A DNA stretch of 63,411 nt, filler included, from Ministeria vibrans ATCC 50519 (Eukaryota > Protista > Filasterea), in the NCBI GenBank assembly GCA_943704425.1. It is 9 parts of 9 records of this genome, joined end to end, with 100 filler letters (N's around TTAATTAATTAA, not from the genome) between each part and the next. Parts side by side here need not be neighbours in the genome. Positions count along the whole stretch, not along the records: positions 19,614 to 29,874 come from CALSCP010000801.1; 8 more parts are not named here. One strand, written 5' to 3'. Positions 24,135 through 28,366 of the stretch are shown here, piece by piece. Numbering within the stretch: position 1 is the first letter of the stretch; every line of letters begins with the position of its first letter. The notes below the pieces were generated by a model, which was given only the letters and a program-made list of their open reading frames with translations, had not been told where the DNA came from and made no database searches. The position numbers were made by a program, and so were the translations under genes.

Positions 24135-27100
24135 ATGAGCACTAAAACCTTCTCGTACCGCAACTCGAAAGACCGCCAGCTCGGCATCTACCTCGGTGCG
24201 ACCCTGTGTTCATTTTTCTGTTGATTTTCTTCTTCTCCCGCTTTTCCCACTTACTTCCCCTCTCTTCCAATGAGCACGATCTGCTCTTGTCACGCGTGTG
24301 GCCGTGTCAAGACCCTCGTGGGCTGTACAGAGCGGCTACAGAAAAAAAAAAAAAAAAAAAAAAAAAAAAAACTTGTACGTCATGGATTAACTTTTGGGCT
24401 CATCTGACGTTTAGCCGGGCGCGTTTTCTACGACCACGGGTCCACGGTTGAGCCCATTGAGGGAGTCATCAAAATCAGCGACAACCACCTTCTGGCTGAT
24501 CGAGGTACGTCCGTCTGAGCGCAAAGCAGAGCAATGGGGGTTTGATGGAGGACCTAAAAAGTTCGCTGTCGGCTTATCTCGTTCTCTGACACTCTCATTG
24601 GTTCGCCACCGCAGCGGTGTACTTGGAGGTTGCCTGCGACTACACGTACGAAGACGAAGACTACGAAGTTCACAAGAAAGTCTTTTTTGAGCGGACTGTG
24701 ATTCTACATCCCAACCCGCTCGAGAAGTTTGTCGCAAACAGTGCACAACGCGCTCTTGTCAAAAAGATTGGCGCTCCATGCTTCCCCTTCACGCTGACCA
24801 TTCCCTCGGTATGCCTCCAAGCGTCTCTGACATCTCTTCTGACTGACCGTGGTGTGTTCATTGATGGTGCAGCTGACGCCTGCGTCGGTCGTGCTCAAGC
24901 CAGGCGCCTACCACGAAGGTACTGCGTCTGCACACACCCACCCACCCTACCACCTCACACACTACTTCATAGGTCGTCAGATTGGGGTTGCCTGGTCGAT
25001 TCGCTCGTACATGACGTCGCCTGCGTCAACTGCCAAGCAGAGCCACACGTCGATGCCCTTCCGCAAAGTCAACTACTTTCCTATCCACGCTCCTCTCAAG
25101 CCCGTCGAGGTAGCAACACAACGCACCCTTATTGACCAACTCCTCGTTTCTCTTCGTTGTTTTATTATTATTATTATTATTATTATTATTATTATTATTA
25201 TTATTATTATTATTATTATTATTATTATTATTATTATTATTATTATTATTATTATTATTATTATTATTATTATTATTATTATTATTATTATTATTATTAT
25301 TATTATTATTATTATTATTATTATTATTATTATTATTATTATTATTATTATTATTATTATTGTTATTATTTTTTATTATTATTATTATCATTATTATTAT
25401 TATTATTATTATTATTATTATTGTTATTATAATTTCAATTGTTTTCTTTTGTATCGTTTAGTTCAAAGGCAAAAAGTCCTTCATGTTCGACTCGGGCAAT
25501 CCCCTGGCGATGACAGTGGAGCTTGAAAAGGATGTGTTTGTGCACGGCGAGCCAATTGCGGTCCACGTGACGATTCAGAACGACAGCAAAAAGGATGTGT
25601 ACGCGGTGAAGCTGTCGGCCAAGCAGATCTGTACGGTCAAGTACGACTCGTACACATCCAAGTTCAAGTCACAGGTGTCGCTGCTCGAGTCAACGCGTCA
25701 GTGCCCCATCAAGAAGCAGACACGCGTGAGCACCACGTACAGCATCATGCCCAAGCTCATGTCGCAAGAGCACCACCATGTGGCGCAGGAGATGAAGCTC
25801 AACCTGGCCGACGAGGCGCAGCTTGCAGCCACGACGCGCTTGAACCACAGTGGCGCAGATGACTTGCTCGGCGTCATTGTCTCATACTACATGAACGTCC
25901 ATGCCGTCGTCAACCTTGGCTCCGACCTCATTGTCAAGGTCCCTTTCCACATCTCCTATCCGCCCCCCGACCCACCCTCCTCCTCATCCTCTTCCTCTCG
26001 TGAGCACAAGAATAAGCTCAAGGAGAAGGAAGCGGCCGCGGCTGCGTCTACTTCTGCCACGACCACGACTACCGATGCTGACCCGTCGGCTGCGCTTGTT
26101 GGTACTACCGCTGCTGCTGCTGCGGTGGTGGCTCAGGACAAGGAAGAGTGTCTGATCGATCTAGACAACGACCATGTCCCTGAGCTGCCCTCCTTTGCCG
26201 ATCGTGCCCCCATCGCCTCTGCCACCCCTTCAACGCCCTTCTTTCCCAGCGACGGTAACGTCTTTGGCGCCCTCGATGCGGCTCCCAAGAGCGGCGTCGA
26301 TGCCGCCATCGAGATGGTGCGTCGTGCCAACCGTTTGTTGCTCAAGGCACAGTCGGCCGCCAGCTCACACGCACTCCCCAACCTCATCGAAGAGCCCGAG
26401 AGCGATTCCACTGTCACCGCCTCGAACCCGGGCGGTGAATTGCAAATGTTGGCGACCGTCAGCAAGCAAGTGGGCGGCACAGTGAATCAGCTGCTGCTCG
26501 ACGTGTCGCACGTCCGCAAGAACATCGACCCCAACAGCGTGCACACCGTCACCAAGTCAGCCGAGAGCGTCGCTGCCTGCCTTGATGCCCTTGCCACGGC
26601 CACCGTCACCGCCGCCAAGTCTACCAAGGATACCCATGCACAGCTGCGGCTTGTTCAGCTGGTCTTTGACATCCTGGAAAAGTCGATGCTGCTCCTCGAG
26701 GCGGTCAAGACTCGCCTGGCCGATCCCAATGGCGCCACGGCCGCTCAGGACCGTGACCAGCTGCACAATATCGCCGAGTACATCTCACAGGCCCTGCCGG
26801 CTGTGCTTAACACACTGCCGGGCCAGTGCGAGTGCAAGGCCGCCATTGACACCATTAGCACGACGCGTCTGCACCTGCAGCACCAGTCGAGTGCCACAGT
26901 CAGCGGAGCTGTGTCTGCGCCCCCTCTCACTCTCCCCACCGCCGCCGACCGTTTGCACAACACTGCACGTGTGCTCAGCAACGCCTTCAAGCTCATTGGC
27001 GCCGCGTGTGTGGGCGCCGGCGACACAGACCAGCTGGCCGTGGGCGCCGCCAACTTCCGCCATGCTTTGCCGGCGGTGGTGAGTGCTGGACAGGCATTGG

Positions 27101-28366
27101 GCTTGACCATTGCTGACACGACTGTGCGTGCGCATCTCATTGGGCAGCTCGATCTAGTGTGTACGCGTGCTGTGGTGCTGCTGCGAGCCGCCATGGAGAT
27201 CCGCCGCGACACGTCGGGTGAGAAGCGCACTACGCTCGACCAGGCCGCAACCGCCATGGTCAATTGCATGCGCACTTTGTTGACGGGCACTCAGCAGCTG
27301 CGCATGCAGTACGAAGAGCTGCAGAAGGCCCAGCCGGACATGGAGTCGCTTCGTCGCGTGCAGCACCTACAGCAGGTGAGCCAGCAGCAGCAGCAGCAGC
27401 AGCAACAACAGCAGCAGCAGCAAACGCGTCGTGATAGCTTCGACGAGTTTATTGCGGCGCGTGCGGGATTCGACGAGCAGTCACCTGTCGAAACAGGTGG
27501 ACCCTCGACCGAACAGCAGCTTGCCGAGGCACTGGGTGGCGTAGCACTGGGCGGTACATCCGACGGCACGACGGGTGATGCCTCTATGAGCGATGCGGCA
27601 ACGGAACTTATGAACGTGTACAACCGTGTGGCACTGACACGCAAGGCACTTATCGACGCCAAGGCCCGACCGCGTCGTATGTCGGTCATGGTCAACCAGC
27701 CGGTGCTGCCTGGTCGCGCAACTGTGCTCGACTCGATGCTCCCTATCATCAATGCTGTCTCACATCTTGTGCAGCAGTCGCACGAGCGCGTCAAGGAGCT
27801 TCGCATTCTTGGACGTGCCTTCCACGCTGCAAACTTCTACCAGAAGGACCGCTCGTGGGCCGAGGGACTTGTCGCTGCGGCCGCTGCACTGGCCAAGAGC
27901 ACATCGGCACTGGTGCACACGGGCGACGACGTGTCGCAGGGTGATGAGCCCGTCGAGGCTCTCATCAAGGCCGCCAACACCGTCTCCAACGACGCAGCAC
28001 ATCTCGTCGCGGCATCGCAGGTGCAGGAGCACGTCAACAGCAATAGCCAGACGGACGTCGAGGTGGCCTCGCGTGCCGTCACCCAAGCCACCTTCAACCT
28101 GCAGCAAGCGGCCGCCAATGTCTCCGCTCGCACTCTTCCGGCCGCCCAGCCCACAGGTGGCGTGTCCGCCGAGGAGTTTCACAAGCAGCAGCAGATTCTC
28201 GAGCTCGAAAAAGATTTGGAGACCGGTCAAAAGGTGTGTGAATTACTATTCTTGCATAATTATTTTTATTTCTTATTCTTGATTTATTTTATTTTAATGT
28301 GTTTCATTTTTTCTTTCACAGACCTTTTTCAAGCAGCGCCGTGGAAGCTTTTGGTCGGACGTGTAG
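24135..28366 (+). CDS. Beta-arrestin-like protein fused to talin rod (R5-R6-like) bundles and a C-terminal I/LWEQ (THATCH) domain; multi-exon
   Basis: Arrestin N: GIYLAGRVFYDHGSTVEPIEGVI, LVKKIGAPCFPFTLTIP, SVVLKPG, FRKVNY. Arrestin C: LEKDVFVHGEPIAVHVTIQNDSKK, LGVIVSY. Clathrin box LIDLD. Talin-like LATVSKQVGGTVNQLL...VLNTLPGQCECKAAI. DSFDEFIAAR. I/LWEQ: FYQKDRSWAEGLVAAA...LVAASQV...ASRAVTQAT...QQQILELEKDLE. Confidence 0.88.
25161..25430. repeat. (TTA)n microsatellite in an arrestin intron
   Basis: About 270 nt of ATT repeats. Confidence 0.97.

Follow-up and report, generated by a model that had tools for sequence, protein, structure and literature searches.

An arrestin fused to talin-type rod bundles and an I/LWEQ module in the filasterean Ministeria vibrans and related unicellular holozoans

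Beta-arrestins, with about 400 residues, are regarded as adaptors that stand alone, and to our knowledge I/LWEQ modules are known only behind a FERM head (in talin) or an ANTH head (in Sla2/HIP1R). Here we describe a gene of Ministeria vibrans ATCC 50519 (assembly GCA_943704425.1) in which an arrestin head, two talin-type rod bundles and an I/LWEQ (THATCH) module are encoded in one chain. The gene lies at positions 24136-28366, on the + strand, of the window, that is, of the whole 63,411-nucleotide stretch that was presented (nine parts of nine records, joined with filler). The analysis was confined to the piece 19614-29874 of this window, which comes from CALSCP010000801.1. The fusion architecture is certain, and the rod is clearly talin-derived.

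The head of the fusion protein and the animal beta-arrestins 1 and 2 and visual arrestins have the two-lobed fold in common, and these arrestins give its best sequence match in the Protein Data Bank. Also shared with animal beta-arrestins are a lariat-loop acidic pair (here Glu/Asp), Arg169 (in the window protein), an LIxLD motif after the C-domain and an FxxFxxxR motif. In contrast to animal beta-arrestins, the fusion protein is about 700 residues longer, with the rod placed between the clathrin box and FxxFxxxR and followed by I/LWEQ, its finger loop and Asp26 are altered (see below), and it belongs to a separate paralogue clade. Compared to talin, it has two five-helix bundles like R5-R6, including the LPGQ turn, and a C-terminal bundle and helix like R13-DD, but it is without the FERM head, R1-R4 and R7-R12, gives no VBS or IBS2 match, and has Gln in place of K2443 and K2445. 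The logic is the same as in Sla2/HIP1R, namely a membrane- or cargo-binding head, a clathrin contact, and THATCH with a terminal helix, although the head is an arrestin instead of ANTH and the middle consists of talin-type bundles instead of a coiled coil with a clathrin-light-chain site. TLNRD1, an example of talin rod bundles outside talin, was among the weak fold matches (6xz4); it resembles R7R8 and has neither an arrestin nor an I/LWEQ part. The Capsaspora owczarzaki protein CAOG_02203 (P0002 below) shares all four Pfam domains, and their order, with the window protein, at 37% identity across exon 6 and with all exons collinear; it differs in having three NPF motifs and an FxxFxxxR motif that is off by one residue. 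The fusion family is a third class of I/LWEQ protein beside talin and Sla2/HIP1R. The features of the gene are as follows.

24136-24196, + strand: exon 1, with the start codon at 24136 and the arrestin N-terminal strand (MSTKTFSYRNSKDRQLGIYL); from the sequence and tblastn of P0001 residues 3-23
24415-24504, + strand: exon 2, arrestin N-domain; AG acceptor, GT donor, tblastn of P0001 and P0002
24615-24808, + strand: exon 3, arrestin N-domain with the shortened finger loop and the KKIG..FPFT strand; tblastn, 50% identity to P0001 and P0002
24873-24918, + strand: exon 4, arrestin N-domain; splice sites, tblastn
24973-25109, + strand: exon 5, end of the N-domain and interdomain hinge, with the Arg that aligns with beta-arrestin R169 (FRKV); splice sites, tblastn
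25110-25461, + strand: intron 5, spliced out in RNA contigs of runs X1, X6 and X20, present in DNA run X8
25462-28233, + strand: exon 6, 2772 bases in a single open frame of 924 codons; arrestin C-domain, tail motifs, rod, I/LWEQ
25495-25962, + strand: arrestin C-domain, exon 6 residues 12-167; Pfam Arrestin_C 8e-14, beta-arrestin-1 residues 193-361 at 3e-19
26152-26166, + strand: clathrin-box-type motif LIDLD, exon 6 residues 231-235, 64 residues past the C-domain; regular expression, family alignment
26296-26811, + strand: rod bundle 1, five helices, talin R5-like; model helices 18-189, profile match to 2l7n (R5) at E 3e-20, Foldseek target-normalised TM-score (TMt) 0.82
26812-26823, + strand: LPGQ turn between the bundles, invariant in the family
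26824-27330, + strand: rod bundle 2, five helices, talin R6-like; profile match to 2l10 (R6) at E 2e-11, Foldseek TMt 0.72
27382-27422, + strand: CAG repeat (poly-Gln), linker between the rod and the AP2-type motif
27433-27462, + strand: DSFDEFIAAR, AP2 beta2-appendage-type FxxFxxxR motif preceded by RR, exon 6 residues 658-667, between rod and I/LWEQ
27571-28134, + strand: THATCH (I/LWEQ) five-helix bundle with its upstream helix; Pfam, model with predicted local distance difference test (pLDDT) 86, Foldseek
28168-28233, + strand: first part of the C-terminal, dimerisation-type helix; model helix 214-234, aligns with the talin DD and the Sla2 C-terminal helix
28234-28321, + strand: intron 6, 88 bases, GT..AG; contig joint 28231>28320 (cut +2) in the RNA-like runs X1 and X6, unspliced in DNA run X8
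28322-28366, + strand: exon 7, last 14 codons (TFFKQRRGSFWSDV) and stop, completing the terminal helix

The gene comprises seven exons with 3342 coding bases (1114 codons), as read from the GT..AG sites in the sequence. Exons were searched singly, and full-length natural homologues were used where a contiguous protein was needed. In tblastn, the matches of the full-length homologue P0001 fell in order on exons 1-6 and those of P0002 on exons 2-6, and exon 7 carries an R-[RK]-G-S-x-[WF] end that is kept in P0001-P0004. The start at 24136, the exon 6 bounds 25462 and 28233 and the stop at 28366, which had been proposed in an earlier reading of the DNA alone (hereafter the original prediction), agree with the splice sites, the collinear tblastn matches and RNA contigs. 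The peptide strings quoted in that reading are all found in the translation, the first of them as IYLAGRVFYDH across the exon 1/2 join.

Read-derived contigs were compared with the genome over 25440-28420, with the long TTA repeat left out. It was found that contigs of X1, X6 and the poly(A) RNA-seq run X20 depart from the genome at 25460 and continue upstream with the final bases of exon 5, which shows splicing of exon 5 to exon 6 across the repeat-filled intron; this joining is backed by RNA contigs of three studies, whereas DNA run X8 is unspliced and collinear with the window. One X1 contig (record 1, 2503 bases) consists of 25460-27374 plus 551 upstream bases, and so reaches from the arrestin N-domain into the rod; the 551 bases match the length of exons 1-5 plus a leader of about 25 bases. 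Contigs from several studies, of both DNA and RNA, cover the two sides of the CAG repeat with 0-3 differences, and continuity across this repeat is given by the assembly, by the open frame and by homologues collinear with the gene. Both junctions, from arrestin to talin and from talin to I/LWEQ, are within exon 6, so that, as had been argued from the sequence, no merging of gene models is involved. The locus is an intact, transcribed gene encoding a protein of about 1114 residues.

Several repeats and variants were noted in this region. Intron 5 is mostly a (TTA) microsatellite at 25162-25434 (about 92 copies, 96% match), which is cleanly removed in the RNA contigs, and intron 1 contains a perfect A30 run at 24342-24371. 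The length of the CAG repeat may differ between strains, as all short-read contigs break there. Runs of different studies show single-base differences in exon 6 at 26199, 26224, 26362, 26856 and 27135, including A>G at 26224 in three runs; these fit strain variation, and the frame is intact in all.

The matches of Arrestin_C, Talin_IBS2B and I_LWEQ in exon 6 all exceed the Pfam gathering scores. When the C-domain of the window protein was compared with solved structures, beta-arrestin-1 was the best match (3e-19), followed by beta-arrestin-2 and the visual arrestins. A family profile matched beta-arrestin-1 residues 14-392 at 9e-66, again the best solved relative, and the beta/visual class originally proposed for the head is confirmed by these values and by the Arrestin_C score. 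Each of the five short N-terminal exons, searched alone, gave no Pfam match, being too short to score; therefore, the N-domain was assigned by collinear tblastn, in which these exons were collinear with P0001 and P0002 at 43-67% identity. The N-domains of both homologues pass Pfam. Two gapped N-domain tblastn matches, which read through intron 4, had 29-33% identity. In the lariat-loop acidic pair, D290 is replaced by Glu and D297 is kept as Asp, and no placement was obtained for R393.

The rod gave a Pfam match to Talin_IBS2B on exon 6 residues 278-455 (3e-14). A rod profile built from the C-terminal halves of four family members aligned contiguously to talin-1 1049-1374, which is R5-R6, with 125.6 bits (independent E-value 2e-35), whereas other parts of the talin rod scored 24 bits or less. 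The AlphaFold model of the rod (pLDDT 83) has five helices, the LPGQ turn and five more helices, and Foldseek matched it to full-length talin, with a query-normalised TM-score (TMq) of 0.52-0.55, as well as to R5 and R6. The resemblance to talin R5-R6 that had been proposed from motifs was thus recovered by profile and structure alike. The Pfam scan of the gene gave no VBS match and no R11-R12 integrin-binding site. An identity with R11-R12, suggested by the Pfam name Talin_IBS2B, was dropped because the profile fits talin 1049-1374 far better than 1861-2298.

The C-terminal module was identified by Pfam as I_LWEQ (PF01608) on exon 6 residues 793-923 (1e-22, 81 bits compared to a cut-off of 27.5). 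Its AlphaFold model (pLDDT 86) shows five helices and a terminal helix, and Foldseek matched it to talin R13 (TMt 0.79), the HIP1R THATCH core (TMt 0.70) and Sla2 THATCH; the I/LWEQ domain and C-terminal helix of the original prediction were therefore found again, in a model with the THATCH fold. The family profile favours Sla2 THATCH (2e-23) over talin R13-DD (6e-15). The window protein keeps the Trp that aligns with talin W2389, the terminal helix, the hydrophobic blocks and an Arg that aligns, by eye, with talin R2526.

Two arrestin-type tail motifs are found outside the domains, the first of them in an acidic tail. At the position of the clathrin-box-type motif LIDLD, the relatives have LIDFD, LINFD or LINFE, and a bird beta-arrestin-1 used as control has LIELD. 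The second motif, RRDSFDEFIxxR, is the best-conserved linear motif of the family, with invariant Ser and Phe. In beta-arrestin, the AP2 beta2-appendage motif is DxxFxxFxxxR, in a helix (PMC1540706). The regular expression FxxFxxxR matched five of the seven family members as well as the tails of bird beta-arrestin-1, Capsaspora CAOG_01077 and a Salpingoeca rosetta arrestin; since the same expression finds the canonical arrestin tails, both arrestin tail motifs are taken to be kept in the fusion family, with the rod separating them. We infer that LIDLD binds clathrin and that the FxxFxxxR segment binds AP2, and candidate tail peptides for such binding are the LIDLD region and RRDSFDEFIAAR (with its Ser).

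Two conserved sites of the basophilic-kinase type RRxS are present, RRDS at 27427-27441 before FxxFxxxR and RRGS at 28340-28354 at the C-terminus, and these suggest phospho-control of coat binding and of the terminal helix by a basophilic kinase. Capsaspora CAOG_02203 has, at about residues 410-435, three NPF motifs after its clathrin box, and the window protein has none; motifs of this type are ligands for the EH domains found in endocytic proteins.

When 1.84 billion representatives were scanned with HMMER, only six matches fell below 1e-30. Five of these, P0001-P0005, have all four domains in the same build, and the sixth (P0006) is an arrestin open reading frame. The named carriers are Capsaspora owczarzaki (CAOG_02203, deposited as 'hypothetical protein'), Pigoraptor chileana (transcriptome) and the ichthyosporean Chromosphaera perkinsii, and the four-domain build also occurs in three environmental lineages. 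In L001, from a 769-kb eukaryotic contig, P0006 lies at 10001-13566 together with an open reading frame for rod and I/LWEQ (P0007), 74 bases upstream of it on the same strand; a phase-0 GT..AG intron of 164 bases (11108-11271) joins the two and completes a UBA-like segment. Together, P0006 and P0007 are a sixth fusion, split by a prokaryote-style gene caller. The UBA-like insert is common to P0005 and L001, with a Pfam UBA score in P0005 of 18.7 bits, below the cut-off of 22.4, and P0005 is found on mRNA-like contigs of about 3.4 kb. No further protein with both an arrestin and an I/LWEQ domain was present among the matches listed (150), and searches with the family alignment and with P0005 residues 1-420 gave no further named relative among the matches listed. 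Pfam gave no match to a FERM head in the window gene or P0001-P0005, and none to ANTH.

In an unrooted maximum likelihood tree of the arrestin domains, seven fusion arrestins grouped with two standalone relatives, one of them from Chromosphaera. Animal beta-arrestins, S. rosetta PTSG_07382 and Capsaspora CAOG_01077 were on the other side of a split with 98/95 support. Capsaspora thus holds both a fusion (CAOG_02203) and a standalone beta-arrestin orthologue (CAOG_01077). Because of this split, and because Capsaspora keeps both forms, the fusion is an old holozoan paralogue and not an orthologue of animal beta-arrestins; the idea of the fusion as the organism's only arrestin did not hold. The fusion paralogue predates the split between ichthyosporeans and filastereans. 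It was not found in choanoflagellates or animals on present sampling, and was apparently lost before these lineages arose; the arrestin tree, being unrooted, accommodates either gain or loss of the C-terminal half. In the I/LWEQ tree, the core fusions form a clade (99 by the Shimodaira-Hasegawa-like approximate likelihood ratio test) on a long stem, which falls neither in the Sla2 clade of opisthokonts nor in the cluster with the talins. The P0005 lineage is extremely diverged, and the tree does not separate talin from Sla2 as the source of the module. Within the beta-arrestin clade, the S. rosetta protein PTSG_07382 (P0121, 858 residues) has a long N-terminal extension, and its arrestin domains come last, with the match reaching about residue 815.

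By analogy to Sla2/HIP1R, we propose, with a probability of roughly 60%, that the protein is a dimeric endocytic linker between cargo, clathrin/AP2 and actin. In such a linker, phosphorylated or activated membrane cargo would be captured by the arrestin head, and the tail motifs would bring in clathrin (through its heavy chain) and AP2 (through its beta2 appendage). The C-terminal module would form a dimer and anchor the coat on actin filaments, and the pair of talin-type bundles would serve as a spacer or would bear force. One polypeptide could then do what arrestin and Sla2/HIP1R do separately. The original prediction of an arrestin swapped for the usual head, linking receptors to F-actin and the clathrin coat, stands as regards the architecture, but its actin part and its assumption of G protein-coupled receptors as the cargo are less well founded, as described next.

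Several observations weigh against this proposal. At the head, the finger loop is four residues shorter than in beta-arrestin-1, and the polar-core Asp26 is Val in the window protein and Thr in its relatives; Arg169 is kept in the window protein, whereas it is Gln in P0001 and P0002. Because of these three differences, receptor sensing may differ from that of animal arrestins. In the AP2-type motif, the Asp is at -2 instead of -3, and an Arg is at -3. Every short-read contig (four runs) breaks at the CAG repeat 27375-27428, and none spans from the rod to I/LWEQ. On the actin face, the basic pair K2443/K2445 of talin is replaced by Gln-x-Gln followed by Glu, the window protein reading SQVQEH. 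These two positions are Arg or Lys in 75/80 and 77/80 other I/LWEQ domains, respectively (S-[RK]-V-K-[AS]), and the other five core members with a scored I/LWEQ domain have Gln (once Leu)-Val-Gln-Glu. In the F-actin co-sedimentation assays of Gingras et al., the talin mutants K2443D and K2445D bound at 43% and 48% of wild type and a triple mutant at 27% (PMC2168396), and acidic residues on the actin-binding face of talin lower binding (PMC2168396). Because the basic contact pair is replaced by Gln, direct F-actin coupling is not secure.

These replacements would fit a dimeric arrestin scaffold, in which THATCH and its helix serve for dimerisation or for another partner without binding actin, and the protein is a bivalent adaptor between cargo and clathrin/AP2. 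The family has SQVQE in place of a near-universal basic motif, the talin mutants show that those basic residues matter (PMC2168396), and the fusion clade sits on a long I/LWEQ stem with the P0005 lineage extremely diverged. However, the module keeps its fold, its central Trp and its hydrophobic blocks, and the Pfam score is 81 bits; talin with one of these Lys changed to Asp retains 43-48% of its binding, and a change to Gln is less drastic. Furthermore, the replacement is shared across the core family, as if this surface were being maintained and not decaying. We therefore regard such a scaffold as unlikely, though credible.

A talin-type linker for adhesion or phagocytosis seems less probable still. 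Here an arrestin head would stand in for FERM and couple receptors to actin at contacts, filopodia or phagocytic cups, with a mechanosensitive rod and a minor part for clathrin. The rod is specifically like talin R5-R6, talin-type bundles unfold under force in animals, and of the named carriers, Capsaspora is an amoeba and Pigoraptor a predatory flagellate, both of them filastereans, and the third is an ichthyosporean. However, the FERM head, the R11-R12 integrin-binding site and a Pfam VBS match are missing, the clathrin box and the AP2-type motif are conserved, and P0002 adds three NPF motifs. Capsaspora-type organisms, moreover, presumably keep canonical talin.

A mechanically gated arrestin, suggested by the position of the rod in the C-tail between the clathrin box and the AP2-motif segment, is an improbable elaboration. 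In animal arrestins, the tail segment with the AP2 motif is a strand that docks on the N-domain and locks the basal state. If DSFDEF still docked on the N-domain, the tail would be freed, and the arrestin switched on, once actin pulled at the I/LWEQ end or the rod unfolded; cargo binding would conversely free the actin-binding end. Read as an insertion, the fusion might be a relic of how the tail motifs of beta-arrestin arose before animals.

An artefact, by misassembly or by the merging of an arrestin gene with a talin-like gene in the model, for which the breaks of the short-read contigs at the CAG repeat could be cited, has a negligible chance of being correct, given the one uninterrupted frame of arrestin C-domain, rod and I/LWEQ in a single exon, the DNA and RNA contigs of several studies on both sides of the repeat, and the collinear full-length homologues in the Pigoraptor transcriptome, in the annotated genomes of Capsaspora and Chromosphaera, and on the mRNA-like contigs L003 and L004.

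The full-text literature on arrestin with LWEQ, THATCH, talin, Capsaspora, Filasterea or CAOG_02203, a scope that leaves subscription journals and supplements outside, contained no description of the fusion. The architecture as such can therefore still be called undescribed, as the original prediction had it, but it is not unique to this gene and recurs throughout a conserved family, of which CAOG_02203 was already deposited as a 'hypothetical protein'. A survey of G protein-coupled receptor signalling reported arrestin architectures conserved between unicellular holozoans and animals (PMC3971589), two arrestin-like genes have been described in Capsaspora (PMC3307776), and arrestins were recorded in Choanoflagellata, Filasterea and Metazoa (PMC5501109); a talin or I/LWEQ extension is unmentioned in each.

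The family adds a third type of head to those known on I/LWEQ proteins, so that a single chain holds a cytoskeletal module together with the parts for recognising cargo and recruiting the coat. As filastereans and an ichthyosporean have the fusion in addition to a canonical arrestin, and no choanoflagellate or animal was found to have it, it is a candidate part of the machinery for endocytosis or receptor trafficking in ancestral holozoans, and would have been lost in the line that led to animals. The altered actin-contact residues amount to a natural experiment on what defines actin binding by THATCH. Since Capsaspora is open to transfection and editing, the function of the fusion is directly testable.

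The genes around the fusion locus are unrelated to it, and are as follows.

19693-20205, + strand: exons of the mitochondrial ATP synthase delta subunit, with ATP-synt_DE_N and a metazoan-type C-terminal domain; AC/ACAT-repeat intron at 19851-19960
20511-21644 and 22464-24074, - strand: two tandem Cupin_8/JmjC-like genes
28660-29290, + strand: downstream gene with a ubiquitin-like domain; (GT)36 repeat at 28848-28919 in a likely intron

The second Cupin_8/JmjC-like gene is in two open reading frames (22464-23075 and 23145-24074), probably split by an intron.

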